A stretch of DNA of 64,000 bases, from the NCBI RefSeq assembly GCF_000150275.1, contig NW_002060984.1, positions 21,185-85,184 on the forward strand. Direction: 5' to 3'. The stretch is from Trichoplax adhaerens. Lineage: Eukaryota; Animalia; Placozoa. Positions 6,101 to 60,000 of this stretch are shown here, in pieces (within the stretch, counting starts at the first letter, position 1; every line of letters starts with the position of its first letter). The position numbers were made by a program, and so were the translations under genes. The notes under the pieces were generated by a model, which searched no databases, was not told the origin of the DNA, and was given only the letters and a program-made list of their open reading frames with translations.

Positions 6101-8972
6101 ATACATCCAACAGAAATTTAGCTCGAGCTTACACTCAGTTACCTAAGATGAGATATTGCTTTAATAGTGTTTGCGTATATAATTCTATCTGGATTAACAC
6201 CTGCATTGAGTATCGATTGTATTTCACCCTACAAGTATTATGAAGAATAAAAAATATGTCCATGTAAAGAACTATAAATTTATATTAGGCAAAAAAATAT
6301 AATCCATCCTAATCTATAACAAATGGACGTTTATTACAAATTTCAAGAATGCATATACATTACACTACCGAAATTAGATTAAGTACGTAGTATCATAAAC
6401 TTTTTAGTTATCATGTATATTATCGATCGATATTTTAACTGAAAATTATAATTTTATTAATTTCCCTAAGTTTGATAAACTATCTATTAAGAATTAATCA
6501 TTACATTGCTTGTATACCTACCAAGCTTGCACAGTCGAAGCTAACTCCTAAGTTTATTAAAGTGCGTAACAGGACGGGATCATTATTGCATTTCATAGCT
6601 TGAAGGTAATTGTATTTCGATAGCACAGATAATAGTAAGTGCATTAGTGGTGATCAGTTTGAGTTTCGCTCTGCTTATAATTATACTACAAATCAGGAAG
6701 TACAAAAGCTGCCGCAATACACTTAAGTTATAGTGAATTATAGATAACACACGTATGACCATTTCATTTACGATATAAATTGCACTTACCATAGAAAATC
6801 TCAACATTACGGAGTCGCATTTTCCACTGATGTATTATAACCATTGATCAGGAAGATAATAAATACAGCATTATCAAAGAGGGAAAATCATTATTTTAGC
6901 TTTACTTTCGCTGATTTCTTCAGTCCTGGTATATTAATATTCCATTGCATTCTACATTAAATATTTACTATTTATCTAATATCTATTATGTAAGCCTAAT
7001 TATGACTGGATGAATATTGGCCAAAGATTATTACCTCCTGATATCGTTCGATAATATCGCCAACGTTAATTAGCATGAATGGATCATCCCTAAACTAATA
7101 CAATAATTACGCAAACATAAAGTTTTACAGCTTCATTCGCAAGTCTAATACACAAGTTAATTACATATATCAGGGCCAATTATCGCAATATTTTCTTTAT
7201 TCTAAGCTCACAATTGAAATATATAATATAAGACGCTGACTTAAAAAGCGAGATGAGTCCTTAGTTACTGCAAACAGTGGAAAACTTTTGTGAAATCTTT
7301 TTAATTAAGAGTTCTTGTCAATTGATAACATTGATTATCGATGTGAGTAAGTAGGACAGCTTAAATTGTTGGTGAAGTGCCGATGACCTGAGTCGATCAA
7401 GCTACTATTACGACGCGAGCTTCGCAATTTGTCTATATGAATCAGATTATTGGTGTAAATTATCAATAAATTAATAGCTACTTGAACCGATTAAGCTGCA
7501 ATATCGTAAAACCAGTTAGGAAAGCTAAGCATGATTTGTCGATGTGGCCTTAGATAGCTATAGTATTATCAATAAATGAAATGTTAATGACCTAAGCTAA
7601 TCAGCTTACGGCATTCATGAGAAACTACACGATTTGTGCTTGTGAATCGGATTCCAGACATAAATTGTCAATAAAATATTAACCACCTGATCGATTAAAG
7701 TAAAGCATTGCTAAGCTAGTTGGATATACTGCATGGGTGTTACTTATACACGATTTATTGATGTGACTAGTATAAACAGTCAATGAAGTGCCAATAAGCT
7801 ATGTAAATCAGGCTATCGTAATGATAAAAGCTGATCTAATTATGATGCAGTATTGTTAAACTAGTAAGGATAGATATGCATGATTTATTGATATGTAGCT
7901 TTTAGGTAGCATTTTCCAGTATAATATAACTACGTATTTTATCTATGAGAGTAGAATTGGTCACATGAGTAGTTACTAAAATATGAGCCACCTGATTTAG
8001 TTATGCTACAGTATTGCTAAACTAGTTCTGATCGGTAGGTATGATTTGGTGATAGGCAGTTGTTAGGTAGCAAGTTCACATGTAATATAACTAAATTTTT
8101 TATCTATGAGAGTGGAATTATTCGCATGAGTTGTTATTGAAATATGAAGCACCTAATCTAATTGTGCTGCAGTATTCTTAAACTAGTTAGGATAGCTATG
8201 CTTAACTTGTCGATTTGAGTGGGATTACTCACATGATTTCTCAATGAAATATCAATGATCTGAGCTATTGAAGCTACATTAACCAAGTAAATGGGATTAC
8301 TTGTCCATATTTTCAATGGAAAATATTGATGTCTCGAGCTAATTCAGCCGCAGTTATGTTACAAAGTGGCATAATACGTGAATAAGCATAGTGAGTTGTT
8401 TACCAGGTAAGTCATCAATACAAGTGTTTGATGGTTGATGCACTACAGGATTTCATGCTTGCAGATATAGTAAGCACTTAGGCTTGGGTAAAAATGGTAT
8501 AACGACCACAATAAATTCTTATCTTATTCTAAACAAGAACATATACAGGCAATTGATCTGGCTATCTGATTCTTGGAAGGATAAATTGTTCGTATGGAAT
8601 TACATTTCAAGTACGCTTGATCTATAAAGTTGTCACCGTTTTCCATTTATCATAGTATTCAAAAACAAAGTTGATTTAGTGCAGTCAAGCTACCAAGTCT
8701 AGCATAATGAACTACCGCTATCCTATACAGTTACTTGGTACTGTTTTCAGTGAGTAAATCTTAAATTAAGACTCAGTCTACTCTGAAAACTCTGTTGATG
8801 CCCATTATGAAATCTTGATAAAGAAGTACTTGGACTACCAGTAGTCCTTGAGAAATATAACACAATAGTGTTCACTCAGCTACGATCATTTTACCTCTTC
8901 ATCCATCGCTTTGGTTTTCCTAATAACTATTTCATGCACCGTTAAATCAGGTAAAATTTCGACTGTTTCCAT
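3134..8972 (-). CDS. ODC1: Ornithine decarboxylase (ODC-A), 17 coding exons, roughly 430 aa
   Basis: Spliced by eye (e.g. 8895-8972, 7035-7094, 6790-6826, 6522-6598, 6143-6228 ... 4061-4098, 3747-3926, stop at 3134). Fold-III PLP motifs: FYAMKCN (PLP Lys), FDCAS, IIYAN, KFGA, FHVGS, LDIGGGF, IIAEPGRYF, YYVNDSVYG, GQTCDSLD, GAY. Confidence 0.92.
7340..8400. repeat. Degenerate tandem repeats in ODC-A first coding intron
   Basis: Recurrent blocks such as TATCTATGAGAGT(A/G)GAATT (7940, 8101), CAGTATT..TAAACTAGT (~7848, ~8009, ~8170) and GATTT.T.GATGTG; period ~160 nt in the right part. Confidence 0.6.
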
Positions 8973-12288: not shown

Positions 12289-15075
12289 TTAAAACTTGAC
12301 AACTTGTTTTAGCTTTCTCGACTCCAGAAAGTTGTGCCGTTTAACAGCTTTTTCCTGAACTCCTTTCTGAGTGAAGAATGATAGTAGCGAAACGGTATTA
12401 TCGTTATCAAATTCCTCGTCATCCTCCCTGAAATACGATATATACAGCAAGAATTTAGACCTACCCTAAAAACACTTTTTACCTTGGGAAATATACGAAG
12501 ATCAAAGATTTAATTCAACTAAAAAATATACCAATGAACGCGAACTGCAGACTCATCCAAGATTTTCTGGCATGTTGACCAACTAAACCTCACAAATTGT
12601 GGGTAACCAAACACCTTATCCAAATTTGAATTCAACCACTTTTGTGTAGCTGGATCTATCATACGACAGTAATCATAGGCGTGTTTAAGGATATTATATA
12701 ACTGATAAAGCGACACAATCTATCACAATGTCATTCATAAAATATTATGCACAATCTAAAAACTTAGTGGATACTAGAATTTATCAATAGGAAATGCTAA
12801 ATTTAATACCAGATGGATATCCACATCCATAATCGGATGAATTATAGGATTCATCTTCTGGAAATTTCCAATTACTTAGGACTTTATCTCTAGTTACCTA
12901 AATTCATCATTGAATAGACTTAGTGCACAATCCAATATATTTAAATTTTAATTTTCGAATTCTGCTACTGGGCCGTCATATATAATGTAAATAATATCCT
13001 TACATGTAGTATTTGTAATATAGCAACTATTTAAGTAATTTACCGATTAACAAAGAGTCTATCAACCGACTGTTGAATGATGCAAATCACCAATTGGCAT
13101 TACCTTGGCAATAATGCTTGCAGCGCTGACGCATGGAAATAATGCATCTGCCTTTGGAGTTACTTTAATGGTAATATCAGGAAATAGTTCAGATAGTTTG
13201 TTTTGATAATTTTCCGCTACACCAACGGTATCGACGTAAATCTAATCAATAACATTATATCATATCTTTAATAATACTTGGAAGTATTCTTTGTTAACAT
13301 CATGACATGGTTAAAAGCACCTTCGTCCATACAGCAATATGTGAAATTTACAACATTACCTCTTTTACTTGAACTCCCTTCTGGATCGATTGTCTTATCA
13401 AGTTTATAGCGGCATCATGCGATACGGCATTTAAGCTATATTTCGTCCTGAAAATAGAAATAGTAAAGTCATGCAAGAGTCAGATTACTGAACATGTCCA
13501 TTATACACATAGCCGCTATCCACTGTAGTCGATATCACTGATTGCAAATGATAAACTATTAATGCACTGGTACGAATGCCTCATTCATAGTGCTAATACA
13601 ATGCAATCTGCGTCAGAGTTGTCTATTTGCACCATGTGATTGGGGGAAGATTACAACTAGATATGTATATAAATATACCTTGCAAGCATTTTTGTGGATA
13701 TATCGCTGGGTGAAATAATCTCTACTAACCAACCAACAGAATCATCCGAGTTTATCTTTTGAAATAGTTCGTCTCTCATATCTTCCGTAAGAACCTTAGA
13801 GTCTAGATTTCATTTTAAAGGTAGTAAATAGCAACAATGAACAGAAATATAAATTTTTAGTTTATAACTTTCAATTTTACTATTGCAAGTCCATTGTGAT
13901 TTATCACTTTACAGATTGCTATGTACTGGATGGAAAACTATCTATAAATATCCATCAAGGCACCCACCCTTACCAATCCATCTCGACATTATTTCTCTAT
14001 AGTATCGGATAACATGAACTAATTGTCAATAAACCAATGCTAGTAATACGATAAGCTACAAAATTTGCATTCGCTATATTAGTAAAACTACTAGCAATAG
14101 GATCAAAATAATATGTTTAATCAGTATCAGACTGCCTACTGAGTGACTACCTTGCACGCACCATTCACATAGATTGCACATAGAAGAATCCTGTGGATCG
14201 AGTAAACTAATCACTAAGCAGTATTGTCGATGATTTTTGTTCAAACACTCCAAATCAGAAAAAATTTTACAATTTTGGGACGATGAGCGATTAATCTTTA
14301 GAATGGTTGATACACGTACGCTCAAAATATGACAAGTTACCTGCTACTCCTAATTCCTTCACTTTTTCAGATTGTGATAATGGATAATAACAAGCACCGT
14401 AAACCATTGCACCTAAACAAATTGAATATTAACTATATTAGGTATACGAGTATGTTTGTCGATTAGAGCATCCTAATTCAATTCTTTATTACAGTTACTA
14501 TACTATGCATGCTGCACTTTCAAGTTGTTTTAAAACTGTGACTGACAAAAACCAAAATCCAATCCTACGATTTTATTGCTGTTATTAGCGTTGTTACTCG
14601 ATTGGCGTAATCAACTATGCGAGTGGAAGAGGTCGCTTAGTCCATTTTTACCACGGTACACTACTGTCGTTGTCAAGGTTAATTTGATCATGACGTTTTG
14701 TGACGATGGAAATGGCTCGAACATCATCAATTTACCGATGTAATGCCATTTTTTTCCATTTAGCCAACTGTCCATCATCACAATAAGATATCGCACTCTT
14801 GAGGTAGACTCGCTTGCAATCGTACTTTTATTGGCAGAAAACTCTACATGTACAGTAAATCAAAGCTAGGACTACTAGAATTATAGTCGGTGCAATATGA
14901 TCCTATCATTTGCTTATTCTAAATTGATTGAGTATTGGACATTTGTACCTAGAACTGGACCTCGGCCTGCTTCGTCGATACCTAAGCAACACGGTTCATT
15001 TTGAGCAGCTTGCGGTGTGCCAGAAGTCAACACACAGCTTTTACTATTATCCATTTCGTACTGACTAATATCCAT
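12289..15075 (-). CDS. RNASEH2A: Ribonuclease H2 subunit A, 8 exons
   Basis: LGIDEAGRGPVLG|AMVY, GVA|DSKVL, YSLNAVSHD, IYVDTVG, KADALFPCVSAASIIAK|VTRD, YGCGYPS|DP, VFGYPQFVRFSWST, and a C-terminal PIP-like SLLSFF. Confidence 0.95.
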
Positions 15076-15289
15076 GTTGGAAATACCACTGCTACAATAT
15101 TGCTGCAAAAGGCTCAAAGTTGAAGAATTGGAAATCAAATCCCAAGTGTTATGTCGGCAATGGAATCGATCAATATTTTTCGTTGAAATGGCCTTTCCAG
15201 CTCATATTAATTGATCTCAAATTTCCATAGCTGGTCAAATTACTGTACCGATTTGCAAGTAAGCGAACCAAAACTGCATGGCCAAAAAC

Positions 15290-21958: not shown

Positions 21959-24900
21959 ATGTTCCAAATTTGCGATGAAGATATTGTTATTGCCGGCATA
22001 TCTTGCCGAATGCCTGAATCCGATAATGCCGAAGAATTTTGGCAACACTTAATTCAAGGAAATGATATGGTCACCGAAGATGATCGACGTTGGCCGCCTG
22101 GTATATTTGGTTTACCTAAACGAAATGGTAAATTGAAAGATATAGAGCACTTTGATGCAATCTTCTTTGGAGTCCATGCTAAGCAATGCAACACTATGGA
22201 CCCTCAGTTAAGAATATTATTAGAAGTAACTTACGAAGCAATAGTAGATGGTGGAATAAATCCAATAGAATTTCGTGGTCGAAAATGGGGTGTTTTTGTC
22301 GGTCAAAGTGGATCGGAAGCCATGCAAGCTTATCAATCGAATCCCGACATACAAATTGGTTATAGTATGACAGGATGCAATTGCTGCATGTTATCCAATC
22401 GATTATCATATTATTTCAATTTTAATGGTGAGACAGCAATTAAATTGCTACATAGTTTATAATAATGAAAGGAAATTTAATTGATGTATCAATTAAATAA
22501 TATACTCATCTACTTGAACTGCTTTACATTTCAATAGGACCTAGTATTTCAATAGATACAGCTTGCTCTTCATCTCTAATAGCTTTTGATCAGGCTATTA
22601 GAGCAATTAAAACAGGAGTTTGCGAGGGGGCTATCGTCGGTGGCTTAGGACTTGATGTTAAACCTCACACAAGCTTAGAATTTATGAAATTAGGCATGCT
22701 ATCACCTGAAGGCGCCTGTAAATCTTTCGATAATTCTGGTAATGGATATTGTCGATCAGAAGGTAATCTACTCTCTCATAGCATGGTATACATGTATTTT
22801 AATCGTCACATACACCCTGTGATAATAGTGGGGCAAAAACACTCACATATCGCTAGAACAAGATCTAGAAGCTCAAGTCAACTTGTTTACTTTTTAGATA
22901 CAAATAAATTCTATGCTTTCCAAGGTTTTACATATTATGTACCGTCATAGTATTATCGTAGATAAAACTAGAAACGTACAGACAACGATAACCAAACAGT
23001 AGGATTTATTCATAATGACCACAGGCTAGATGTCGTATTATAAAATACTATCTATACCAGCTTGGTTAACTCTTCCTCATGATGTCGCTTTACGTATACA
23101 CACTACGCGATGCAGAATTTACAGTATAAGCACAAAAAATTTCATTATGCAACTACCACGTACTCTGGTACATGATCCAATTGCTTTCCCTAACTGAATT
23201 TTATTATACCGTGCTAACGATTAAATATCCCCCATTTGTATCTCATCCACTTGTATTCTAGCCTGTAGTAAGGTATTTAAATTATTATACGCCTAAAGAA
23301 CATCAGCTAACATAAAATTTTTATGATTAATCTTGAGTATAGTAGTCTAACCATGAAGAAATGTGTTCCTTAAGATAGTGGCACAATTTAAAGTCCAATT
23401 ATCATACTTTACAATTTTAATGACTAGATTTTATGATGTTTCGTGATCCCAGAATAAGTACAATTTATCTTAGCTATATGTATACGTAGAGTATATACGA
23501 ATATTACTAACTTTGAACAAATAAACGTTTAGGAATCGTCTCATTGTTACTACTTAAGAAATCTCAAGCTAAACGAAATTATGCGACAGTTATCCATAGT
23601 AAATCAGCTAGCGATGGCTTTAAACAACAAGGTATAACGTTCCCTAATGGAGCTGCTCAAAGTCTATTACTTCAACAAGTTTATCAAGAAGCCAGAATCG
23701 ATCCGCAAAAAGAGGTTAACTATGTCGAAGCTCACGGAACCGGCACCAAGGCTGGCGATCCACAAGAAGTCAATGCTATCGCTTCTGTCTTTATTGGAGA
23801 AGACCGCCAGAATAAACCTCTTTTAATAGGATCTGTTAAGTCGAACATGGGCCATTGCGAGGCGGCGTCTGGCTTAGCCGGTGTAGTCAAGGTTATTCTG
23901 AGTGCTCAACATGGCATTTTACCCCCAAATTTACATTTTAATCAGCCTAATCCAGATATTCCGGGATTACTTGATGGAAGTATAAAAGTAGTAACAGAAC
24001 CCACAACTTTCCCAGGTGAATAACGATTAACTAAGTACCGTACCGAAGTAACTCACCATAGTTACTTCAAAGTAAACATTATCGCATATTGTATTTTATT
24101 ATATATTAATTTAACAAAAAGTAACGTAACTTTACTTGACGAATTTTATTTTAATAGATGGATACGTTGGAATTAATTCTTTCGGTTTTGGGGGAGCTAA
24201 TGCTCACGTATTATTAAAACCCAACGTATATTATCAAGAAGATGCTGATCGAAGTAAACATCAAGAACTATCACTTATTCTATGTTCTGGGCGTACACGA
24301 GAAAGCGTCCAAAGCTTAATCCATCTTGGTCACAAAAATACCGATAATCCGTATTTAATTAACTTAATTAACAGTATATCTGCTACACCGATAAGTAATA
24401 ATTATCATCCGATGCGTGGCTTTGCTTTACTAAATAGTCAAGAGTCTATTCAAGATATCGATCTTACTGTATCAGATAAGCGACCTATCTGGTGGATATT
24501 TTCTGGAATGGGAGCTAATTGGAATAAAATGGGTCAGAACATGATGAAATTTCCGGTTTTCAAAAATACAATCACGAGAGCACGCGAAATATTGATGCCT
24601 ACAGGATTAGATCTTATAAATATATTATTTAGTGAAGATCCTAATGTTTACGATAATGTAAGAGATGCATTTATTGGTCTTGTAGCAGTTCAAATAGCTC
24701 TTATAGATTGTCTTCGAGCTTGTGGAATCGAATACGATGGTAAATATTGTAATTTAAATGGAATTTATTATATTATGTAGACGAATTAGCTAGTTCAAAA
24801 CTAATCCGCCTCTATAATGTAGATTTTAACACTTGAATACTTCGATCAGTAACAGACACAAATTTAAAATTAAAATAATTACAGGTTTAATAGGTCATAG

Positions 24901-27900
24901 TGTTGGCGAAATAGCTTGTGGTTATGCCGATGGCGCACTTACAGCTGAGACAGCTTTACAGATTGCTTACTGGCGAGGACAATCGATTCTTGACGCTAAG
25001 GTAGATAGCGGAGCCATGGCGGTAGTAGGACTAAGTTGGGAAGAAGCCAAACAACGTTGTCTGCCAGATGTTGTAGCAGCTTGTCATAATGCTGAAAGAG
25101 CTATTACTATTTCAGGCGATCCAAATCAAATTGACGTGATGATTACGGAACTTCAATCTCAAGGTTTGTAACTTTTCGGGTACTTTGTTTTAATTTGTAG
25201 AATGAAAGTAGAGTATAATATACGATTAGATCAGAAGCCTACAATTCTATTTGTTTAACATTGCTCGCTCAACAATAAAAATAAACGTAATAATTATTGC
25301 TTTTATTATTCATCAAGAATTGATAATATCCTGTAATCATAGTACGTACGATACAATTTTATATCGATTTAAATTTATAAGTGCTGTTAATTTATCTAGA
25401 AATTTTTACAAGAAGAGTTAATAGTTCCGGCATAGCTTTCCATTCTCCATATATTGCTAAAGGTGCATCGCTATTCAAATCTGCCTTGAAGAAAATTCTT
25501 AAAACGCCGAAGTTGCGCTCTTCGCGATGGATAACTACCTCAGTTCCCAAATCAGAAATCAACGATGAATACGCAATGTACGCTTCAGCAAAATATTACC
25601 ATAATAATTTTATCAATCCAGTACTATTCTATGAAGCGATGACAGCTATACCAGATAATGCTATAGTTATCGAAATTAGTCCTCATCATATTCTTCAAGC
25701 TGTTATAAAGCGAAATCTCACATCGAATTCGTTAGTACTTAAAACCATGCGTAAGCATCATTCCGATAATCGTGAATTATTCTTAAATTCGCTTGGCAAG
25801 CTGTATCTTCAAGGGATAAATATTGATCCTTCGCCTCTTCTGCCTAAAATCTCTTATCCGGTAATAACTTACACTTGAATATGTCAATATTTAAATCTCA
25901 AGTATGTAGATATATTATAAATACAAATACGACATTAAAAACTAATGTATATGTGTACCATAATAGCACTACAGTACTCTTACTTTCTTATCGTTAATAT
26001 AATTTTAGCGTATCAAAATATCTTAAACAAGATAGCAGGTGTACACTATGCAGCTCGCTATAGTATATAGTAAAACTTCAGTACTCATAGCACTTATACT
26101 GTAGGATAATATATTTACAGCAATTATTTACCCATGATAAGATGTTAAAGCAATATATTTGTGATTTTAAAATATATAATTAAAGTATCTCCTTGAATTC
26201 AAGCTTTACACAGTCAATTAATATAAAATTGATGATGGGTAATTCTTTGCTTGTAGCTTTATCGTAAAAAAATTCTGCTAGATGTAATTTAGTAACAGTA
26301 AACTGACATTGCACCACCATATATGAAGCGTTAACTTATAGTATAAGATATGCATTCTTTATTCAATGTAAAATTGTAATTATGATCAAGAAGATTTCCT
26401 TTTTCTTATTTCTCATTATAGGTGCCTGCAGGTACTCCGTCTATTGCACCAGCAATCACCTGGGATCATTCTCAAACTTGGGCTATACCTACTCTCGATA
26501 TGTTTTATTTAAAGAGTAATCAAAACTCTTCTTCTGCTATTACATTCGATATCGATCTCTCCGCAGATTCGCCTGATCATTATGTCTTGGGCCATGTAAT
26601 CGATAACCGAGTAATTTATCCATTCGTAGGTTATTTATTACTTGCTTGGAAAGCGTTAGCTCGATTATTAGATACAACCTATACAAGACTACCTGTTATA
26701 TTTAAAGACGTTGAAATTCATCAAGCGACGTTACTACCATCTACTGGTATTGTCAAGTTTAACGTCGATATTAAAGTGAAAACTGGAAAATTTGAAATAG
26801 AACATTGCAATAATATAATAGTTACTGGAGAAATTAAAGAAGCTGAAGAGAATATTGCTGTTAGTCAGTTATCGCCAATAGATCATAAAGAAAAGTTAAG
26901 ATTATCTAATGAAGATGTCTATAAGGAGCTTCGTGTACGCGGATATGATTATAGCTTAAGCTTTAGATCCATTCATGATGCATCACGTGATGGAACAAGT
27001 GGCCAAATTATCTGGGAAGGAAATTGGGTTACGTTTCTTGACGCTATGCTACAAATGTCAGTAGTAGGCTTATCTGGACGTAGTTTACCCTTACCAACAC
27101 AAATTCGTTATATTTCTATTAACCCCACGAAACAAACTTACTACTTACAAGAGGATGAGATAGATAGCTCTAATAATGATGAAGTGCAAGAAGGAGTAAC
27201 TAACTCACACCATCAATTAGTACAATATATTCTAAATCCTCATACTAATGTTCGAGTTTTAGGTAATATTGTTGAAATGCGTGGAGTAAATATCACTATT
27301 GCGCCGCGGCGACAAGATGATCCAGACGGATTAACCTTAGCTGAGTATCATTTTATACCTTATTTTGAGCAACAAACCATGCACAATAACGAAATGTTGG
27401 TCCAATATAAATCTCACTTACAAGACTTTATTCAAAACAATTGTAATCAAATATCACAACAATCACAGAATAACTTAAATGAGAATAGTATAGTTAAGAA
27501 ATTAACACAGCTACTAGATAGCAATACGCAAATCGATCATGACTTAGATAATGACAAGATCGAACAATATCTAGAGAATAACAATTATAGTTTATTCCAG
27601 CTATTATACAAGGTCTATCAAGTTAAATCCGATATCGGAGCAACGCATCTAGTAGAAGATATTGTACCTGACAGTATAAATTTATTAAGATACGATATTT
27701 TATTGTCGGCATTAATTTCGCCTCGATACTTAAGGACTTCGATCGATATTGTATATGAGAATATGTTTACATCGCCTATTCGTATTGTAGAACTTAATGC
27801 TGTCTATGGACAACTCTTTCGAAGTGTAATCCATTCTATATTATGGCATCCTCAATCAAGTGTAGCTTATACGGCTTTAGTTAGACACACTGAACATCAA

Positions 27901-30900
27901 ACTAAATTAGAGGGCGAAGTTAAAGCTTTTAGTAACATAGCTAGAATAATGCTGTTTAATAAGGATGTTATAAATGATCAAATGAAAAAGTCTACAGATT
28001 TACTTTTAAGTAGTTACACTACTCTGTATGAGAATATCTCAGCTGAAGATCAGATCTCGTTAGCAGCTACATTATTAAGTGACGGCGGATTTTTCATTTT
28101 ACATGAATGCACTCGTAATTTTGCAATAGTTTTAGCTTTATTTGCTTACAATAAGAATATATGGACAGATAGTAGGCCGAATGGTCATCGTTTGTTAACA
28201 GAAAGTGAATGGATAGCTATTTTAGAAAAGAGTGGATTTCAAATTGTCTCCATGAAAAGCGATGGTCTACTGTCGACTTTATTTATCTGTCGATATCGAA
28301 ATGTTGAGAATATTCAATCGTCATCTATGCTATTAGACATTAATAGCATCCAATTTGATTGGGTCGAGATATTAAAGGAAATGATGGCTGATAATCGTAA
28401 ACAAAAGCAAAATAAAAAGATATGGATAATCGCTGATTCTAATAATACATCTGGTGTAATTGGATTTATGAACTGTTTACGTAAAGAGCCAGAAGGTGAA
28501 AATGTTCGTTGTATTTTCAATGCTTCTCTTGAAGATTCGAATTCATCTATAAATATAATATCTGAAATGGAGAAAATTCAACAACACGATTTAATTATAA
28601 ATGTTTATCGCGATGATCGATGGGGATCATTTCGTCATTTATATATTTCTCAACAACAAACATTATCAACAAGTCATCCGCATGCTTATATTAACATGGA
28701 TATTCGAGGGGATTTATCGTCATTAAAATGGTTTACTTCCTCTATCAGTTATACTCGACCTAATAATGATGACGATGATGATTATGACGAAGTTTTATAT
28801 CATATTTATTATGCCCCTATCAATTATCGCGATGTTATGATTGCTACTGGTAAACTAGCGCTAGATGCTCTACCTGCTAATGTCTCGACACAAGAACGTA
28901 TTCTAGGCATAGAATATTCCGGAAAAGATGATCAAGGCCGCTGCGTAATGGGATTATTACCTTGTAATGGTATGGCTACAACTATTGTAACTAAAAAGAT
29001 ATGGTCATGGTTTGTACCTGAGAAATGGAGTCTACAACAAGCAGCGACTATCCCAATAGCTTATTCGACAGCGTACTATGCTCTAGTTTTAAGAGGCCAA
29101 ATTAAATGTGGAGAATCAGTATTAATACATATTGGCGCCAGTAATGTCGGTCAAGCTGCTATTAGAATCGCATTATCTAAAGAATGTAGAGTTTTCACGA
29201 CTGTCGGTACAGAAGAAAAGCGTCAGTTCTTATTACAACAATTTCCACAATTATGTAACGAAAATATCGGCAATTCGCGAGATACATCTTTTGAGGAAAT
29301 GGTTATGAACGCTACTAATGGACATGGAGTAGATATAGTATTAAATTCGTTATCTGGAGAAAAGTTACATACGAGTATTCGTGTATTAGCTGATCACGGT
29401 CGATTCTTAGAAATTGGCAAATACGATTTATCAAAGAATACCTCGTTAGGTATGGCTATATTTCTACGTAATATTTCTTTCCATGGTATCTTATTAGATG
29501 CGTTACTCGAAGACGACAATCCTGAATGGCCGCAAGTAGCTAAACTTGTATCGGATGGTATAGCATCTGGTATCGTGCAGCCTTTGAAAACGATCGTATT
29601 CGATCGCGACGATTTAGAAAGTGCATTCCGATTTGTAGCTCAAGGTAGACATATTGGGAAAGTACTAATTCGAATCCGTGATAACGAGAATGATTCTATC
29701 GATAAATCGATCAACTTAGCTAGTAGAGTTCGATTTAATTGTATAGCGGATAAGAGTTATATTATAACAGGTGGTCTAGGAGGATTTGGTTTAGAGTTAG
29801 CTCAATGGCTAATCGATCGAGGAGCATGTAAACTAGTCTTAACGACTACAACTGGAGTTCGTAATAACTATCAAGCAGGCAAAATATCTACATGGAAAGA
29901 TAAAGACAGTGTAGAAGTTTTGATATATAAATGTAATCTTGCTCTTGAAGAAAGTGTAGAAGATTTAATTTTTGTGGCTGATCAGTTAGGTCCTATTGAT
30001 GGTATTTTTCACTTAGCTGGAGTATTTGATGATGGATTATTCGAAATTCAAAGTCAGGAGTCTTTTCATAAAGTCGCTAAAGCTAAAATTGAGGGTACAA
30101 AACATTTAGATACTATTTCTCGTATACAATGTACTACACTACAATGGTTTGTTACTTTCTCATCGTATGTTTCTGTTCGTGGTAATATCGGCCAAACTAA
30201 TTACGGTTATGCTAATTCTGCTATGGAACGTCTATGTGAAAAACGACATTATGATCAATTACCCGCAACATCGATACAGTGGGGAGCTATCGGAGATACT
30301 GGTATGGTATTTGATCGTCTTATAGGCGATAATAATACACAGATTGGAGGGATGTTACCGCAACGAATAATTTCTTGTTTAAAAGTTATGGAAACATTGC
30401 TGTTTAATAAGCATCCAGTAGTTTCTACTTTTATACAAGCAAATCGTGGAAATAACTTTAGCAGCGATAATCAGATTTCATCATTTGATCTGTTAAATAG
30501 TATCGGCAATATATTAGGAGTTAAGGATCTGACGACTATTAATGAAAATTCGTCTCTATCCGATCTTGGATTAGATTCATTAATGGGTGTTGAAATTAGA
30601 CTACTAATGGAAAGAGATTGTAAACTATCGATGTCTATCGATGAAGTTAGACAGCTTACAATTAATAAACTCAAAGAAATCAGTTCGTCGCTGACATCAA
30701 ACGATCACAGCGCAAATAATATAGAATCGAGATTACAAACGATAACTGCTATGCAGTTTGACGGATTTCCGATCAAAGCGCCTTTACACTATGATACACT
30801 GATTTCATTAAATACAGTTACATCTAAAGATAGGCCAATGTATATGTTCCATCCGATAGAAGGATCTGTCCAACGATTTACAGATATCGCAAGTAAACTA

Positions 30901-31620
30901 GCTATACCCGTTTACGGTATTCAATTATCGCCTGAAGCACCCATGGATAATACAGAAATCTTAGCTAGATTTTATTTAGATAAAATCAGAGAGAAGCAAG
31001 AAAAAGGTCCTTATCGTTTATGTGGATATTCTTATGGCTGTATGATCGCTTACGAGTTAGCGATTCAGCTACAACGAGAATCGAATGACAATGTAGAAGT
31101 GTTATTTATGATTGAAGGATCATATTGCTCTACGAGTGATCGTTTGAAGATTTATAGAGAGCGATATCGAAAAGAGCTTACTGACGATAACGTATACTAT
31201 TCTGAAATGCTATTTTATTTTATTCAAGCTTACATTTCTAATATCTATCACGATACTCTTGTCGATGAATTGATTAGTTTAACGTCGCTTGAACAGAAAA
31301 TTATTCATATTGTATCGTTAATTATGAAGGAACATCCTAATAGTGAGCGAAAATTTTTAACATGGGTTACTAATTCGTTTATTAATTTAAACAAAATTGC
31401 CTATGATTATGTACCATCATCAAAATTTGACGGAGACATATATATGATAACAGCATCAGACAGGGATGAAATAGCAATGGCTCTAGGCAATGACTACGGA
31501 CAGCAAGTTCAATGCGATGGAAAAGTATATAACAAGATGATAGAAAGTAATCATGTCTCTATATTGCACGACGAGAATTCAGTTAATATTGCTAGTTATA
31601 TAACTTCGAAACTTGGATAA
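21959..31620 (+). CDS. FAS-A: divergent animal type I fatty acid synthase-like megasynthase (KS-AT-DH-psiMT-ER(degenerate)-KR-ACP-TE), 7 coding exons, ~2565 aa
   Basis: Exons 21959-22427, 22538-22762, 23533-24015, 24158-24739, 24885-25163, 25400-25860, 26422-31620 join in frame. [45 protein letters not shown] and [26 protein letters not shown] and [26 protein letters not shown]. Confidence 0.95.
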
Positions 31621-32874
31621 GAAGATAACAGCGTGTTTTCATCTCAATAAAGTAGTTTAAGTATTGTGATCAGTATACTTTAGGTCAATAATCACACTTG
31701 AAAATAGGTTTATTTGTATTGATGTAAGAAAACAAGCTACTAATGCTATTATTGAAGTTATGATTTTAAAGCGATATTACATAACCTGCTTTTATAAACA
31801 TGTGTGCTCTATGGTTATATATTATATGCATGAATAAACACTGAACTAGTTTATAAGTCTTTACATCCGTATTACTTATTCCTAAGTATGTTATGATAAT
31901 ATAATTGAAAACAATTATGGATTATTTAAAGTATATCTTAAATATCAAGTCTGTCATTTATTCGTTATAGTATTATAAGTACTTGTGCTGTTAATTATAC
32001 TTAATATCTTGCAATCATTCCTAAATCACGGCTTCGTATTATACAGTAAAATCCATGATTTTACAATTTACGTTAACTTGCTTTTTTGTAGACATTATAA
32101 TCATGTTTTTAGTGGTATTACTATATCTTATTTGAAGTAATTATGGCTTTTCTGTTAATTCACGTACTAGCACATTTGAGAAATAAATAAGCATAATTAA
32201 AAACATTTTTATTATCACTCTAATCATCGTAAGGTTAATAATCTGCTTTTGTTAAAAAATATCAGCAGCAATTTGATGAATGTAATGACTTACGATTTTA
32301 TAAAATAAACTGCAGACAAATAATTCACGTACTAATAAATCAAGGAAAGAGTAGAATATTATTGCATAATCATGTGAATTTTATTAGACGCGATATTTGG
32401 TGTTTTATTACCAAAAAATATTATTTACTCGCTTGCGTACTTACATGTAGTACGCTGTAGTATTGTTACGACATTACGTTACCTAAAACTACAGAGTTTA
32501 TAGAAATATTAATGTTCACAGTATTTCAGTGTTACTGTAGAGCTGATTTTATCGAAAATAGCTGGTTGCGAATTTACTGAATAAAGTTGTACTATAGAAT
32601 AGAGTATAGTATTTTTAGTGATGGTGTGCTTTTTAGAAGGGTAGATCTTAGGTGTTATGGTCAAAATACTACTGTATACACTTATATAAGATTAGGGCAG
32701 TCATCTTTAGAGAGAACTCACTGTAAGTGCTTTGCATTAGACTAGTAAACTTGTCGGAAAGTAGTCCGTGACAAGTATATATTGCATATATAACTATAAT
32801 TATGATATTATTTCTTTTGCTACACCGTTATAATTTCAATTTAGAGGAGTTAGAAGCCTAATGTATATCGCTCT

Positions 32875-33925
32875 ATCAATACAGTGAAGAGCTATCGGAG
32901 ATACTGGTACGATATTCGATCGTCTAATAGGCGATAATAATACACCGATCGCAGGTGTGTTACCACAACGAATAATTTCTCATTTAAAAGTTATGGAAAC
33001 ATTACTACTTAATAAGCATCCAATAGTTTCCGCTTTTGTACAAGCAAATCGTGGAAGTAACTTTAGCAGCGATAATCAGATCTCATCACTTGATCAGCGA
33101 AAATTTCGTTTATGTGGAGCTACAACGAGAATCGAACGACAATGTACAAGTGTTATTTTTGATGGAAGGATCGTATTGCTCTACGAGTGATCGTTTGTAG
33201 ATTTTTATTGAGAGCGATATCGAAAAGAGCTTACTGACGATAACGTATACTAACTATTCTGAAATGCTATTTTATTTTATTCAAGCTTATATTTCTAATA
33301 TTTATCACGATACTCTTGTCGATAAATTTACTAGTTTAGCATCGATTGAACAGGAAATTTTTCATATTGTATCGTTAATTATGAGGGAACATCCTAATAG
33401 TAAGCGAAAATTTTAGCATGGGTTGCTATAGTAATTCGACTATTAATTTAAATAAAATTGCCTATGATTATGTACCATCAAAACTGCATGGAAACATATA
33501 CATAGTAGCAGCGTCAGGCAGAGATGAAATAGCAATAGCTCTAGGCAATGAGTACAAACAGCAAGTGCAATATGATGGAAAAGTATAAGAAAATATGATA
33601 GAAAGCAATCATGTCCTTATATTGCATGACGAGAATTCAGTTAATATTGCTAGTTATATAACTTCGAAACTTGAATAACTAGATAACAGCACATTCGTAT
33701 TTCAATGAAATTGTTAAAATATTATGATTAGTATACTTCAGGTAGACAACTACGCTTGAAATAGGTTTATCTAAATTTATGTAAGAAAATAAGTTACTAA
33801 TGCTGGCATTGAAATTGAAATTTTACGGCGATACTACAAGGATTGCTCCGATAAATATGTATGAAAGAGTATATATCTACGTATGGACTTGTATATCATA
33901 CGCACAAATACGTACTGAACTAGTT
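32875..33925 (+). pseudogene. Partial, internally deleted duplicate of the FAS-A 3' end and 3' UTR
   Basis: Close nucleotide match to ~30270-30490 and ~31014-31853. TGG to TGA at 32885, frameshifts, and deletion of the ACP and the TE nucleophile motif. Confidence 0.92.
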
Positions 33926-41686: not shown

Positions 41687-50528
<8,842 letters not shown>

Positions 50529-52145: not shown

Positions 52146-55100
52146 ATGGAGAGTAATCGATCGGATGATACTAGTCAAAGCATTCCGGAAGTCAAGATAA
52201 CGTAAGTCAAAAACATTTGAATGTTGTATGAGAGATGTGGTAAAGATAACTACATCACTAGAATCACGTTGATAGTTAAATTTAAATCCTTTCCTACTGG
52301 AATCAAATAGAAATGACTGCCAAGAATGAGATCGAGTTGATAAATACTATAGCACAACCGTGACCAAGAAACCTCATCAATTGATCATGTTTATGATTAC
52401 TCTATCACTAGAAGATCGTAGATATGGATGTAAAAGGCCCTACGATCGCATACATGATTTACAACTGTTAGATTGACGAATTTTACCGTACAGAAATAGC
52501 GATGAAAGATTCTATGCTTATTGATCGAAATATCTTACCGTAAATAACTGAATTGATCATTCAACTCTAATAATTATAATTTATGTTGATATACATCGAT
52601 CTTTTTGGTTAACGTGCATACATACGAGTATAGATACGATTCATCTTTAAATATAGAAAATACGAGTACTATAATATCTAAAGACTCAGATAGACGTAAT
52701 CATGCTGTATGATTGAAACAAAATTAACATCTATTTTCTGTATAGTGCTAGTAATAGCTGGTTGACTTCAATATGGCGAAATTTTTTGGACTTTTCAAAC
52801 ATGTTTAAAGCTTTTATTGGTACAAATTATATGGGATTACCTTTCGGTATCGCTCAAAGTGGACTTGGGGTAGGTGTATTCCATTGATCAAGATAGCGGA
52901 TATAAAATGGTCAACTGTAGAACAATTCTGAGTGTAGATACACTGATTATTATATTTTATGGTATAGCAGTTAAGACTGTACTTGGCAAAAATGTTTGTT
53001 GTCGTTGTAATGCCTTGTACAATGTACATGGCACTAGCTAGAGGCTTATTTAGTTTAGTCTATAATCTAAGTTGATGAAAGATCGAACAGTTTTGGATGC
53101 ACGCCAATGCCGTATATCTACCTACTAGCTATACGCGTATATATGAGTATTTATGTTGGATTGGCTATAAGAATAATAACATGTTATTTTTATCCGGCAG
53201 TCAGTAGATAAATACGTATACGGTATAACAGTTATCTAGAGCTGTTTGATCTTTTACCAATTTAGACTGTAGACTAATTTATAAGTTAAATTTTCCATTT
53301 TTCACAGATCGACAATGTTGCTATATTGGCCTAGTTGAGAGAGAGTCAGGTTCAGGCCATTATCAGATTGACTAGATAAAAGTAGCATGACTGATCGGTG
53401 AGGGATGGATAAATATACTTTAAAGTAATTCTATAATTTCAATCGACGAAAGGTCGGAGTGCTCTGACAATAATTGATTGTGATGGCTTTTAGTTTTGAA
53501 ACAATTAATATTTGCAATTTTTATAAGCTTAAAACGTTATTTAATGTTGGATGAGTATTAGAAATAATTAACAATATTATTTTACACAACACTGATAAAC
53601 AGTATACCACATATCTACTCTATACGGTAAGCTAGAGTCATTTATGCTAGTACAGTATCAGGTTAATGTTGAGGTACAGTAGTTATCCAATTGACTAAAT
53701 AGAGTATCAGGGTGATTAGTGAATGGTATTAACTGCATTCGTTTAGAAGTGGCCAGTAATTACTTACGAGATACTGCTATCCACATCAATAATGCAATAC
53801 TGATTAATATTTTTAATGATAATAAATTAATTACTCTTCTAGCCTGGATTAGCCATCATGATCATTGTAGCCGTCATCACAGATCACTGCTGCCACTTAA
53901 TTGTTGATTGTAAGAAGATCGTTGTTGATCGATTGGTAACTCGTCGTATAATTAAAAGTAATAATGATACAAACTATCAAAATACCACCGAAATCGTCTC
54001 GGAGCAGTCTGTACGTGAAGAAGTTGAAACCAAGCTAACTTATGGTGATATTGGACTAGAAGCGATGGGTGTATGGGGTTTGAGATTGGTTAATATCGCC
54101 TTGTTAATATCGCAATTTGGGTTTTGCATTAATTACATTATATTTCTTGGTAATACTTTGGGGACGATATTTCCAATTGAAGCAAACTATACTAATACTT
54201 CGGTATATTACCTGCAGGTCAATAAAAACATCATTTTAAACTCTATCGGATATTACAATCGATTGAAAGTGTCTCAATACAGTATATATTTAAAGGTTAT
54301 ATTGACTGTAACAGCATCGCTAATTTATTTATTGGTAACTATTTACTTAATTTTGTAGATTGAAGATCGTAACACAAGTAATAAGAGTCTGTTAATACAT
54401 AATTTGCCTTCTGGTCAATCAACGCAGCCGGCTTTTGTCTTTCTAGCTCTAATACCATTGCCTCTTCTAATTTTGACATCTTACTCACGAAATATTCGAC
54501 AACTTGGATTTTCAAGCGTTGTCGCTAATTCATCTTTAATGGTTGGCTTCATAATGGTATTAGTCTTTATCCTTCGAGGTAAAACTATTATACAACAGCA
54601 TTGGTGATGGATGCTGTCAATATTTACAAATCATCTTTTAAAATGCTTTCCTATCTAACGAATATTGCATTGTTGCTGGCTAGTTATTTCATGGATCTGT
54701 TACATTATTGTTGTTGAACAGATTTTAAGGTTCACTCTGGCATCAAATGGGTTAACTGGGCTACTTCATTTGTATTTTTTGGACAAATGACTGGAGCATA
54801 TGAGGGAATTGGAACAGTAAGATGATGTTTGAATAAATATAACAATCATATTGAGCTATTAATGGTACAAAATATTTGGTTTTAAGTAATGTGGTAGTAC
54901 TAATTGGCTCTTGGCTTTATTATTTAGATAATACCTATTGAATCTAGCATGAAAGGCAATAGGCATCGTTTCGGTTTAATGCTACATCTAGCAATAGGCT
55001 TTATGACTTTATGGTTTATTGCACTTGGTATTTTGGGCTACTTACGTTATGGAAATGACGTTAATCAAATTATTTTAGAAAGTTTACCTCGTAATAATGT

Positions 55101-55731
55101 CATCTATAAGATTGTAACTATTTTTTTATGCGTTGGAGTCGTTTTTACATTCCCGCTACAAGTGTTTGTACCAATTGAAATTCTGGAAGATCCTACTTGT
55201 AAATTTTTCAATAAGTTGTGGAGAAAATGTGTATATACCAGTAGCACTCATCACGATACAATTAGCGATCCTAGTCAACCACTTCTACGTGGTGATCTCG
55301 GTTCATCAAGCCCTACTGCTATCAATAATACAAGTTTATTATGCAGGAACGGAAATTCAGTAAAGGTGAATAATATTATGGTAGTTAAACATTATAAATT
55401 TTATTTCCGTATTAATCTTTCATTATATCCTCTTACTGGAAAACAGGTTACAACATGGCAAAGGAACATTTTTAGAACGATCATCGTTTTGATCATTTTC
55501 GCGATAGGAATTGTTTTTAAGAATGACTATGTTTACTTCTCAAGCCTTATTGGGGCCCTAAGTTCAACGGTAGTGGCCTATATTCTACCGTGTTTATTCC
55601 ATCTTCGACTAAAGTCAGCAGATATATCGTTACCTGTAAAGATTAAAGATAGTCTTTTAATCATCTTTGGCATTGGTGCTGGAACCGTTTCGGTAGTTAT
55701 CAGCATACTTAAAATTGTTAATCAAAATTAA
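52146..55731 (+). CDS. Amino acid transporter, Aa_trans (SLC36/AVT3-like) family, multi-exon
   Basis: Exons encode NMFKAFIGTNYMGLPFGIAQSG, TYGDIGLEAMG, SQFGFCINYIIF, GAYEGIGT|IIPIESSMK, GYLRYG, VFTFPLQ, AYILPCLFHL, with many hydrophobic segments; stop at 55731. Confidence 0.88.
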
Positions 55732-57032: not shown

Positions 57033-60000
57033 CTATTGAAATAAAACGTTAACGTTCGCAGCATGCTGTAAATTTGATCTCAATCCTGCTTTCGTAACAT
57101 GTTGAACAACAAATGTTACTTCATCATCATTAAATTCACGTAGTGAAAAGTTCTTAATCATATATACCCTAAGAAAAGATCTACCTACAAAGTTTATATT
57201 TTTTCCATCTTTCAAAAAAATATCAAAAAATTCCGGTTGCGCTGACTCCGTTGCATCATTATCGAGGATAAAGTCCCACATTAAAGTTACGTTTAGTAAT
57301 ATTTGATCTTCGTCAATATCCCAAGAAGTGTCTTTGTATGTAAGGTTAACGATACGGCCAATATCATCTGAGATCACTGAAGGATTAAGTAACTAAATAG
57401 ATTACAAACGTAAAAAGAATTATTTTAACTGTAAATAGACATTCCTCTATGAATTATCGAACGATTGAATAATAAACCAGGTCACTGAATAGAATTCACA
57501 CTAGATATAAACTTACTTTGATTTCACCTAAATCGAGGCAGAAATCTTTTTCCTTTCGCTCTGTATGATTGACTTTCATGATAAAAACATAAGAATTAGC
57601 CTTATCAAATATTAAAAAGATCATGGCCTACGTACAATTGCCTAATGAGGTTGACATACTATTTAATTCTGGTATAATCATCAGTTGTACTTCGCAAATT
57701 GTACAAGAACCACATAATGATTCCGTCAATAAGTAGTGCCTAAATAAAAATGGTGTTATTAAGAAATGGAAGAGGAAATTCTGCAAAGTTATGAGATTTG
57801 AAAGCATTCCTACTCATACTAGTCTAGATATAAATTAAACCTATTTATCCAAGTGGAACGTGGATCTGTCTCTCCAGTATATGTTGCATCAATGATATCA
57901 GTTGATTCATTATTAATAGTTGAAAATGCTAGATAATTTGAAGTGTCGCCCTTGACTTTAAAACCTGAAGGATTAAAACGAGGAGAACAAACCAAACCAT
58001 AGTCCTCCATGCACGCTTCAATTTCTTTTGGCTCACAAACTAGAAAAATAATATATTAAAGGGTATCATTGATGAGAAGATAATAATAACTAAATAATAC
58101 ACCGTGAATAGCAATTTAGTATACCATTTTTAGCTTCTTTTCCTAAGATAATATAAGTCATTGCTGAATCAGTAACAAGTTGCAATGCAATATTGATCGA
58201 GCGCGAAAAATTTTGTGGAATTTTATAGCAACAGGAAATTAAGAGTCCGTCGTTTATTTCGAATTGAGTACGGAACAACCTAATTGGTATAGTGAAAGAG
58301 TTTATTGAGGCTTTATATTTTGAATAGAGGATGGAGTATTTTTAATTTCCTTAAGGCATACCGAAGTACTGCTGCAGAATACTCTAACGATGGTGTGTAT
58401 GATCCATAAATTCGTAGACATTCACCTCCATTGTAAGCATCCAAAGACGAATGAGCAACTGTTGATATTTTAATACTTCCAGCTGTTCCTATGCAATACG
58501 AACGATGGGAATTGGAATAGGATGGCTGTAGCTGTTGTGCACTTAAGTTACTCCACGAAGAATTTTTAGCAATCTAATCAAGGAGTTAAAATTACGATTG
58601 AGAAATATCTACAAATGGAAAAATTACATGGAGCTACCTCAAATTAGAAGAATTTCCAATTTACCTTGCCATTAATGTACATTTTATCACCTCTACCACG
58701 GCAGAATGATGATACTATCGGCAATTCAGTTAGAATACTTGAATTATGACATAGTGAGCTAAGTAAATCCCAAAATCTGTTAAAAATCAAGAAATTACAG
58801 TCTTGGTATTAAAGCATGATTAGTAATACTTGGAACGTGGGTAGGGTTATTAGCAATACTTGTTTTGGTTTTCGATAAAATCTGTTCTTCCAAGACATTC
58901 ATAAACCCAACCAGGTGCAAATAAAGCAGCAGATAAAGAACTCTCTCGAATAACTTCTAACGCCTAATGATTATAATGAAAATTGGATTATTATGTCATA
59001 AAGTTTTTTGATCGTATAAATTTATTTTTCAACGCTATAGAAAATTTAGTTGAACAAGTTCGGGTAGGATGATAAAAACTGAAAAAGTAAGAACGATGGA
59101 ATAGGCGCATTATAACATCCATCTGTAATACTAACATCTCGACTTTTGAAACCACCGCCTTTATAACAACCTCTACCAAAAATATCTATGCCAGCGTAGA
59201 CGTCATGTTTTCGCTCCTGCCCGGCATTCAATACCGACCTTAAGAGATTGCCAGGTTTCCAAACATAGTTTAAAAAAATTCCATCACAGGAATCGAAGAA
59301 AGTTCTGTGTTCAGTAAACCAAAAAAGTATATTGATCAGTGTCAAGTTAAAGCTTTACAGTTGATTAATATCGTCTATTGGATTTTAAGCCTTCAGAATA
59401 GCATTCATTCATTTCTAGTGTTCTCTATTTAAATTTGTTAACCGATGTCAATTATTCTACATCATTCAAAGATGATTTGTTAAAAATCAATATGACGGTA
59501 ATCAGCATTGATTAATACCGTAAACTCTTCTAAAAACGATGATAGAATTGATAAAATAGTTCTCATAATACAGATATTAAGCACCTGTTATACATGTTGA
59601 GTTCATTTTGCCATTTTAGATCGCCAGTATTGGTTACGCTGTCGTACCAAAGTATTTGACCATGTGGTATTTTTTGATGGAGTTTGTTGGTTAATTCTGC
59701 TACAAATTGCACCAATGTCATAATATACTTTTTCTAATAATAAATGGAGAAATGGAGAAGAGAAATTAAAAAGATTTTCTTGTGTCAACATAATCGATCG
59801 TTATTTTGGTGGAGATTGTTGACCTACATCGATTACATCATGTTAATAGAAAGGGGTAGAAATGGCTGACTACTCAGTTAAGTAAAGTAGTATTATAAAA
59901 GTATTGCTTATATTGTTATGGATCGTCGTTGCAAACTAGAACTTGACGTTGCTATTTTGGTGATCAATGGTATAGTTTTATCGTAGAAATTAGGTGCTCA

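Follow-up and report, generated by a model that had tools for sequence, protein, structure and literature searches.

Does a fatty acid synthase (FAS) gene that has lost the Gly-Gly of its enoylreductase cofactor loop still encode a fatty acid synthase, or has it become an animal polyketide synthase (PKS)? This question is raised by a 64-kb window of the Trichoplax adhaerens genome, which is the whole stretch of DNA that was analysed and to whose positions the coordinates below refer. The window corresponds to C1373:21185-85184, and two type I FAS genes, FAS-A and then FAS-B, are arranged in tandem on its plus strand. FAS-A (21959-31620, +, seven exons) was located by tblastn with the Trichoplax FAS protein P0001, and FAS-B (41687-50528, +) is its canonical paralogue, annotated as the FAS TRIADDRAFT_34034 and 98.7-100% identical to P0001. 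An initial annotation had proposed FAS-A as a new animal PKS with a knocked-out enoylreductase (ER). Our comparisons point, as the best reading and with about even confidence, to a partly reducing synthase derived from FAS in which the ER is impaired.

The change at issue lies in the dinucleotide-binding loop of the ER. As had been claimed, direct reading of the genome sequence shows that the Gly-Gly of FAS-B (48033-48065) is replaced by Ser-Asn in FAS-A (29122-29154), where the loop I-G-A-S-N-V-G occupies 29131-29151 (+) and the two altered residues 29140-29145. The codons are AGT AAT in FAS-A and GGT GGT in FAS-B, which gives three G-to-A changes, and since two of these are needed to convert Gly to Asn a single-base error is excluded. 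An assembly or sequencing artefact was rejected on the same three changes and on the contigs of several independent runs that cover the region. Among 393 FAS-like ER loops, the first glycine was observed in 378 (96%) with Ser in 8, and the second position is occupied by Gly in 360, Ala in 15, Ser in 14, Asp in 4 and Asn in none. Both positions are non-Gly in seven of these loops and Ser-Asn occurs in none of them. In the classical G-x-G-x-x-G motif the first loop glycine corresponds to the second Gly, which lies against the pyrophosphate. The other ER changes that had been pointed out are also present, with PINYRD at 28816-28833 in place of the SLNFRD of FAS-B and GIEY at 28906-28917 in place of GMEF.

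Replacement of this Gly-Gly by Ser-Pro is the usual means of inactivating the ER of modular PKSs, as in the monensin and aureothin synthases (reviewed in PMC7327777), and the correspondence to a known ER-inactivating site that the initial annotation had drawn is thus borne out. According to the same review, single mutants of catalytic residues keep ER activity whereas mutants of the NADPH pocket abolish it (PMC7327777). FAS-A is altered at the same two positions of an ER of the medium-chain dehydrogenase/reductase (MDR) type as these engineered ER-null synthases, and the first replacement is Ser in both. The second residue differs, being Asn in FAS-A and not the helix-breaking Pro, and FAS-A is a natural variant in the context of an iterative animal FAS.

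The ER is also the domain with the greatest acceleration compared with FAS-B. A divergence ratio, (1 - identity of FAS-A)/(1 - identity of FAS-B), was determined for each exon piece or domain against ten non-placozoan FAS proteins; in this as in the other comparisons and searches with FAS-A, single exons or domains were used. The highest ratio was observed for the ER (1.40), and the ketoreductase (KR) and dehydratase (DH) gave 1.29 and 1.19. Ratios of 1.20 and 1.05 were obtained for the acyltransferase (AT), 1.09 for the acyl carrier protein (ACP), 1.07 for the pseudo-KR, 1.06 for the pseudo-methyltransferase (pseudo-ME) and 1.07 for the end of the ketosynthase (KS) together with the linker. 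The KS exons (1.03, 1.00 and 0.96) and the thioesterase (TE; 0.98) have ratios close to 1, which indicates that the condensing and releasing parts of FAS-A are constrained as they are in the housekeeping FAS-B. On this measure the domains that process the beta-carbon, namely ER, KR and DH, appear to be accelerated in FAS-A with the ER foremost, their rates being 1.2-1.4 times those of the FAS-B counterparts.

The altered loop is embedded in a synthase that is otherwise complete. Pfam matches on the last exon and the exon alignment to P0001 give the domain order KS-AT-DH-pseudoME-pseudoKR-ER-KR-ACP-TE in one polypeptide, with all domains on the plus strand, and the catalytic residues that had been listed as retained were all found. 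In the KS, which is encoded by exons 1-3 (21959-24015), the alignment places Cys at 22564-22566 and the two His residues at 23733-23735 and 23853-23855. Exons 4-6 (24158-25860) encode the end of the KS, the linker and the AT with Ser 24899, Arg 24974 and His 25441; the AT has GHSVGE, the Arg and the FAS-type motif IAFHS, the equivalent of which in FAS-B is VAFHS. The DH (26422-27321, Pfam PKS_DH_N) keeps His 26593, Asp 27040 and Gln 27052. In the KR (29734-30321, Pfam KR), the Rossmann motif TGGLGGFG at 29767-29790 is retained with Lys 30085, Ser 30163, Tyr 30202 and Asn 30214. The phosphopantetheine Ser of the ACP (30454-30711, Pfam PP-binding) is found at 30577-30579, and the TE (30814-31617, Pfam Thioesterase) retains Ser 31030 and His 31552. 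The pseudo-ME had been described as degenerate, and ELNAVYG is indeed found at the position of the S-adenosylmethionine (SAM) motif (27790-27810); the same degeneracy was seen there in every animal FAS included in the comparison. C-methylation by FAS-A is not expected because of this degenerate motif.

Three further departures had been overlooked by the initial annotation, which was right that the ER is altered but reported that change alone. In the KR, Thr-Thr-Thr (29845-29853, +, by alignment) replaces Ser-Arg-Ser in the stretch after beta-2, where 355 of 362 relatives carry a basic residue (Arg or Lys), mostly as Ser-Arg-Ser. The basic residue after beta-2 usually binds the 2'-phosphate of NADPH in reductases of the short-chain dehydrogenase/reductase type, and the Thr-Thr-Thr of FAS-A may weaken this binding or reflect a change of cofactor. 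The glycine of the DH motif HxxxGxxxxP is Asn in FAS-A (26605-26607), a residue found in 5 of 231 relatives compared with Gly in 212. Furthermore, the Asp of the TE triad is replaced by Glu (31114-31116); Asp is present in 154 of 158 relatives and Glu in three. These rare states in KR, DH and TE show that the change reaches beyond the ER.

Several observations weigh against an impaired ER and are best considered with the rest of the domain. The ER (28699-29691, +) has the MDR fold and is recognised by Pfam ADH_zinc_N and ADH_zinc_N_2 with scores of 47 bits (PF00107) and 51 bits (PF13602); it matches the ER of Drosophila, pig and human FAS in the Protein Data Bank (PDB) with E-values of ~1e-115. 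In absolute terms it is the most conserved domain of FAS-A, with 64% identity to FAS-B in the domain comparison. The proposed proton-donor Lys (29419-29421) and Asp (29497-29499), which align with K1771 and D1797 of pig FAS (2vz8), are both retained (29419-29499, +), as are EEKR, VLNSL, FHG and the C-terminal GxHIGK, motifs that we take to contact NADPH. EEKR is part of the stretch VGTEEKR after beta-2 (29203-29223, +, by alignment), presumably the 2'-phosphate site, as expected from MDR enzymes. The retained Lys, Asp and motifs are compatible either with an active ER or with a recent loss. The loop itself also shows some tolerance among relatives. Ala, Ser or Asp occupies the second glycine position in 33 of the 393 loops (8%), including those of otherwise canonical full-length FAS, and the Ser found at the first position in 8 of 393 recurs in FAS-like proteins of chelicerates and ants. 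In addition, Asn is a milder replacement than the Pro introduced in the engineered knock-outs, and NADPH binding by the FAS-A ER cannot be judged from its sequence alone.

A count of invariant positions points in the same direction. In a vertebrate-heavy panel, 165 positions of the ER, 74 of the DH and 89 of the KR are at least 97% invariant. FAS-A differs at 36, 15 and 16 of them respectively, and FAS-B at 7, 1 and 1. The departure rate of FAS-A is therefore similar in the ER (22%), DH (20%) and KR (18%), and at a rate of 22% hits at two chosen invariant sites of the ER are only modestly improbable (~0.05). The ER departures were observed to be mainly conservative (Leu/Ile, Val/Ile, Phe/Tyr and Lys/Arg). 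The radical ones (Ser to Ile, Gly to Ser and Gly to Asn) cluster in the glycine loop of six residues, together with a milder Ser to Ala, and this clustering favours an impaired ER.

These observations are relevant to a second reading, a serious though less likely rival, in which FAS-A has become specialised and still reduces its chain fully as a FAS. The loop would then still bind a nicotinamide cofactor, perhaps with altered affinity or with a preference between NADH and NADPH that changed together with that of the KR; the product would be saturated fatty acids of another chain length, or fatty acids for a particular tissue or condition. This reading accords with the retention of Lys, Asp and all the other ER motifs, with the conservative nature of most ER substitutions, which include two changes of Phe to Tyr near the nicotinamide pocket, and with the natural variants at both loop glycines of FAS-like proteins. 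Both reductive domains have altered cofactor loops, which could reflect a common shift of cofactor, and TE, ACP, KS and AT look canonical. Set against this are the absence of Ser-Asn from the 393 loops and the conservation of the pyrophosphate-contacting first glycine, the standing of the ER as the domain most accelerated against FAS-B, and the fact that no natural loop variant has known activity. The mitochondrial enoyl reductases MECR and Etr1p, which are active MDR enzymes, also carry Ser at the first glycine, a point against a dead ER; no MECR exon was recognised among the PF00107 and PF08240 matches in Trichoplax. The rat FAS ER was reportedly knocked out by G1672V, for which a literature check gave no confirmation. 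The proposed knock-out is partly supported: the motif is altered at a site where ER-null mutants are known and the ER is the most accelerated domain, with the retention of Lys and Asp counting against it.

Whether the substitutions are those of a working gene was examined through the gene model and the transcripts. Exon-by-exon alignment to P0001 gives the FAS-A exons as 21959-22427, 22538-22762, 23533-24015, 24158-24739, 24885-25163, 25400-25860 and 26422-31620 (+), the last including the TAA stop. Up to the stop codon they total 7695 nt, or 2565 codons, with no internal stop in a genome of ~33% G+C, and all six introns are GT/AG. The exon plan is the same as that of FAS-B with a single giant last exon; the last exon of FAS-B (45348-50525) is 98.7% identical to P0001/TRIADDRAFT_34034, and identity rises to 100% in the exons before it. 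Four public runs (X1, X2, X9 and X10, of which X9 and X10 are recorded as RNA-seq) supplied Logan contigs, which were placed on 24100-30000. The contigs of X9, X10 and X2 skip 24738>24884, 25161>25398 and 25859>26421, which have GT..AG ends and are introns 4-6 of FAS-A, whereas those of X1 read through the introns and are DNA-like. As contigs lacking the introns are present, mature mRNA exists, though the contigs carry no information on the level of expression. The initial annotation had named lack of expression as grounds for abandoning its proposal, and the spliced contigs of X2, X9 and X10 speak against such a lack. FAS-A is a genuine gene with an intact frame, and its transcripts are spliced.

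It is very unlikely that FAS-A is a decaying duplicate that is turning into a pseudogene and is transcribed without a selected function. Such decay would fit the long branch described below, the rare states in four catalytic or cofactor motifs and the failure of our searches of public protein sets to return a match. It would also fit the ratio of non-synonymous to synonymous differences per site (pN/pS) of ~0.41, which is high for a core enzyme; this value is rough, being based on 548 synonymous and 1987 non-synonymous sites and on a partial list, pooled across strains, of 40 of the 167 differences between the contigs and FAS-A (16 synonymous and 24 non-synonymous, 24186-27645). Decay is opposed by the 2565 stop-free codons, the six GT/AG introns and the correctly spliced transcripts, and by KS and TE domains that are as conserved as those of FAS-B. 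The same pN/pS value, set beside a neighbouring fragment that is full of stops, also counts in favour of a functional gene. The sequence next to the gene provides a further contrast. A decayed partial copy of the 3' end of FAS-A, in which the tail of the KR is joined to part of the TE and the ACP is missing, was found by tblastn and blastn at 32870-33672 (+), ~1.2 kb downstream of FAS-A. It matches with 71-80% identity and stops in tblastn and with 88% identity over 565 nt in blastn, and its frame is broken by stops, a frameshift and an internal deletion. This copy is a fragment of a pseudogene left by a local duplication, and it shows how unconstrained sequence looks at the FAS-A locus: only ~12% diverged, it has already acquired stops and a frameshift. 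The duplication that gave rise to FAS-A is moreover older than the split between FAS-B and a third paralogue, FAS-C, an age at which a neutral copy could well have been broken. A pseudogene as the main interpretation was rejected on the open frame, the splicing, the conservation of KS and TE and the age of the duplication.

Three FAS-type ER domains, those of FAS-A, FAS-B and FAS-C, were found in a six-frame search of the whole 105.6-Mb genome, with ER identities to FAS-A of 67% for FAS-B and 62% for FAS-C. FAS-C lies on another contig of the assembly (G000:C1398:44367-49517, -, loci L003 and L006) and is the orthologue of the 'Fatty acid synthase' P0003 of Trichoplax sp. H2 (96.6%). FAS-C retains the Gly-Gly, and its ER was observed to be selectively diverged, with changes at 22 of 165 near-invariant positions in the ER, 4 of 74 in the DH and 3 of 89 in the KR. 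A maximum-likelihood tree was built from the DH-to-TE region of 37 sequences (1681 columns, LG+C20 PMSF, quick search, unrooted). In this tree FAS-A is sister to (FAS-B, (FAS-C, P0002)), and the clade of four members has an SH-aLRT support of 100. The tip branch of FAS-A is 0.66 substitutions per site, compared with 0.11 for FAS-B and 0.11-0.19 for the other three; the amino-acid composition of FAS-A is unusual, which is a caveat on its placement. The placement suggests that FAS-A is an old, placozoan-specific and fast-evolving duplicate outside the mollusc and arthropod lineages of animal FAS-like PKSs (AFPKs). Taken with the constraint on its exons, FAS-A is best explained as a functional, placozoan-specific duplicate of animal type I FAS that appears to have been re-tuned in its beta-carbon-processing half.

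P0002, together with P0378, comes from the European Nucleotide Archive (ENA) and represents a 1698-amino-acid protein that corresponds to the open frame of the last exon of a FAS gene; it is 76% identical to FAS-B and groups with FAS-C. Its source is probably a different placozoan-like organism, in the form of a placozoan metagenome contig whose genes were called as prokaryotic. We searched for a FAS-A orthologue with the last exon against proteins of 953-3031 amino acids, with a 601-amino-acid ER-KR piece against proteins of 330-1051 amino acids, with HMMER over 1.84 billion cluster representatives (50% library) and in JGI metagenome contigs. The proteins nearest to the last exon of FAS-A were FAS-B and P0002, and nothing closer than 53% over this exon came up (67% within the ER, to P0002). 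No orthologue of FAS-A from another placozoan was obtained in these searches. FAS-A itself was absent from the public protein sets searched, from which models that contain only KS and AT, or that are shorter than 330 or longer than 3031 amino acids, would escape. Unlike FAS-B and FAS-C, which have public annotations, FAS-A may be missing from these, fragmented or poorly modelled.

The presence of three paralogues, two of them in tandem, is relevant to a further possibility, that of a dead ER whose function is supplied from elsewhere. A trans-acting enoyl reductase or a heterodimer with FAS-B or FAS-C would then yield a saturated product, or FAS-A would not be an autonomous synthase. The iterative fungal synthase LovB is such a case, having a folded but inactive ER (ER0) and relying on the trans-acting ER LovC. 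The combination of LovB (ER0) with LovC is also mentioned in PMC7280274. We consider this arrangement improbable for FAS-A, which is very distant from LovB in the PKS/FAS tree. The conservation of the ER fold and of the dimer-forming domains would suit it, and several stand-alone MDR genes are present in the genome; no candidate partner was identified, and the 53% identity to FAS-B makes heterodimerisation uncertain.

A partly reducing FAS-A, which remains the preferred reading, can be compared with known animal synthases. FAS-A shares the seven-domain architecture of canonical metazoan FAS (pig 2vz8/2vz9, human 4w82, Drosophila 6fn6 and FAS-B), to which it is 40-53% identical, and differs from them in the ER loop (GASNVG in place of G-S/T-GGVG), in the KR (TTT in place of SRS), in the DH (Gly to Asn) and in the TE (Asp to Glu). 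A large survey found AFPKs only in molluscs and arthropods and considered them possibly restricted to protostomes (PMC10764717); a placozoan case would thus be new, and full-text searches of the literature on polyketide synthases in placozoans returned no description of FAS-A. The AFPKs EcPKS1 and EcPKS2 resemble FAS-A in their origin from animal type I FAS, the FAS domain order, the degenerate methyltransferase and a folded ER with an altered NADPH site; the EcPKSs are iterative and FAS-A is predicted to be so. Their ER domains are the next-best solved relatives of the FAS-A ER after true FAS (E ~1e-76). The ER0 domains of EcPKS1 and EcPKS2 are described as ones that 'lack active site residues' (PMC11831141), and in this respect FAS-A differs from them, as judged against the published description, since it retains the ER Lys and Asp; this is a further point against an inactive ER.

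Other features separate FAS-A from the AFPKs. It belongs to the placozoan FAS clade, which is a different lineage, and any likeness to AFPKs would be convergent because of this nesting. FAS-A has a C-terminal TE with Ser and His, while EcPKS1 and EcPKS2 are without a TE. Based on the resemblance of GHSVGE, the Arg and IAFHS to FAS-B, its AT motif appears to be of the FAS type rather than methylmalonyl-selecting. AFPKs have KS scores intermediate between FAS and PKS, whereas the KS exons of FAS-A are as near to outgroup FAS as those of FAS-B in the identity comparison. By clade, KS and TE, and probably by its AT, FAS-A falls outside the AFPKs and would be AFPK-like at best by convergence. The proposal of a new animal PKS is supported in part, in so far as FAS-A is an intact and expressed paralogue with accelerated ER, KR and DH. 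The analogy that had been drawn with the budgerigar PKS holds for function only; FAS-A is nested among placozoan FAS.

Loops with non-Gly residues at the ER Gly-Gly, as in FAS-A, were also noticed in FAS-like paralogues of arthropods, including Harpegnathos, Vollenhovia, ticks and spiders (P0354, P0293, P0148, P0231 and P0242). The variants found there are GSSG, GASG, GTSG, GISS, GTSS, GSEG and GSDG, and some of these proteins retain Lys and Asp. They differ from FAS-A in that they represent independent lineages, none has Ser-Asn and several also lack the Asp or the Lys.

If the ER of FAS-A is impaired, a reaction sequence can be proposed. Acetyl and malonyl units would be loaded by the FAS-type AT and condensed by the unchanged KS. 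The KR, which keeps Lys, Ser, Tyr, Asn and the Rossmann motif but lacks the Arg, and the DH, which keeps His, Asp and Gln in an altered motif, would then yield enoyl intermediates. The Ser-Asn pair in the glycine loop would abolish or strongly weaken productive binding of NADPH, with the result that the ER would saturate these intermediates never or only sometimes, and the retained TE (Ser, His and Glu) would release an unsaturated acid. In late cycles the Arg-less KR may be outcompeted, in which case a triketide would leave as a pyrone instead. Release of a triketide pyrone has been described for an engineered mouse FAS (PMC12856111). We propose that the ER is kept folded because it is part of the dimeric modifying region. 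A polyene or a pigment as the product is pure inference.

The remaining features of the window lie on both sides of the FAS pair. Exons resembling ornithine decarboxylase (Orn/Arg decarboxylase) are found upstream, at ~6501-6629 (-) and, before the start of the window, at C1373:10365-10818; the exon in the window is ~15 kb from FAS-A, and an RNase HII-like exon (14917-15201, -) lies between them. Given this distance and the intervening exon, a biosynthetic cluster of the decarboxylase-like genes with the FAS pair is not supported. Downstream of the pair are an amino-acid transporter gene (Aa_trans; 53843-55728, +) and a gene for endo-beta-N-acetylglucosaminidase (ENGase; 57036-60947, -) with GH85 and Ig_ENGASE1_C domains. 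Two tandem-repeat arrays were observed, one at 1183-2836 with a period of ~122-147 nt and one at 62428-63584 with a period of ~191-210 nt, the latter in a stretch that is richer in G+C (0.44).

If the impaired-ER reading is true, FAS-A would be the first FAS-derived PKS outside the protostomes. Such convergence in one of the earliest-branching animals would show that animals can readily and repeatedly arrive at natural products by turning a FAS into a PKS. The gene would also be a natural experiment: next to an unchanged condensing half, a few defined sites of the modifying half are substituted, namely the loop of the ER, the Arg of the KR, the motif of the DH and the Asp of the TE, and these can be swapped with the canonical FAS-B that lies in tandem. 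If the ER is active instead, the supposedly essential Gly-Gly can be Ser-Asn, which would be useful for the prediction of ER0 domains from sequence. For the chemical defence of placozoans, FAS-A would offer a specific candidate gene. In the placozoan upper epithelium, 'shiny spheres' are autofluorescent and involved in defence against predators, according to work cited in PMC10580291. It is a speculation, and an improbable one, that Placozoa independently made a partly reducing PKS from a FAS duplicate and that an autofluorescent conjugated lipid produced by it may be the anti-predator compound of the shiny spheres.

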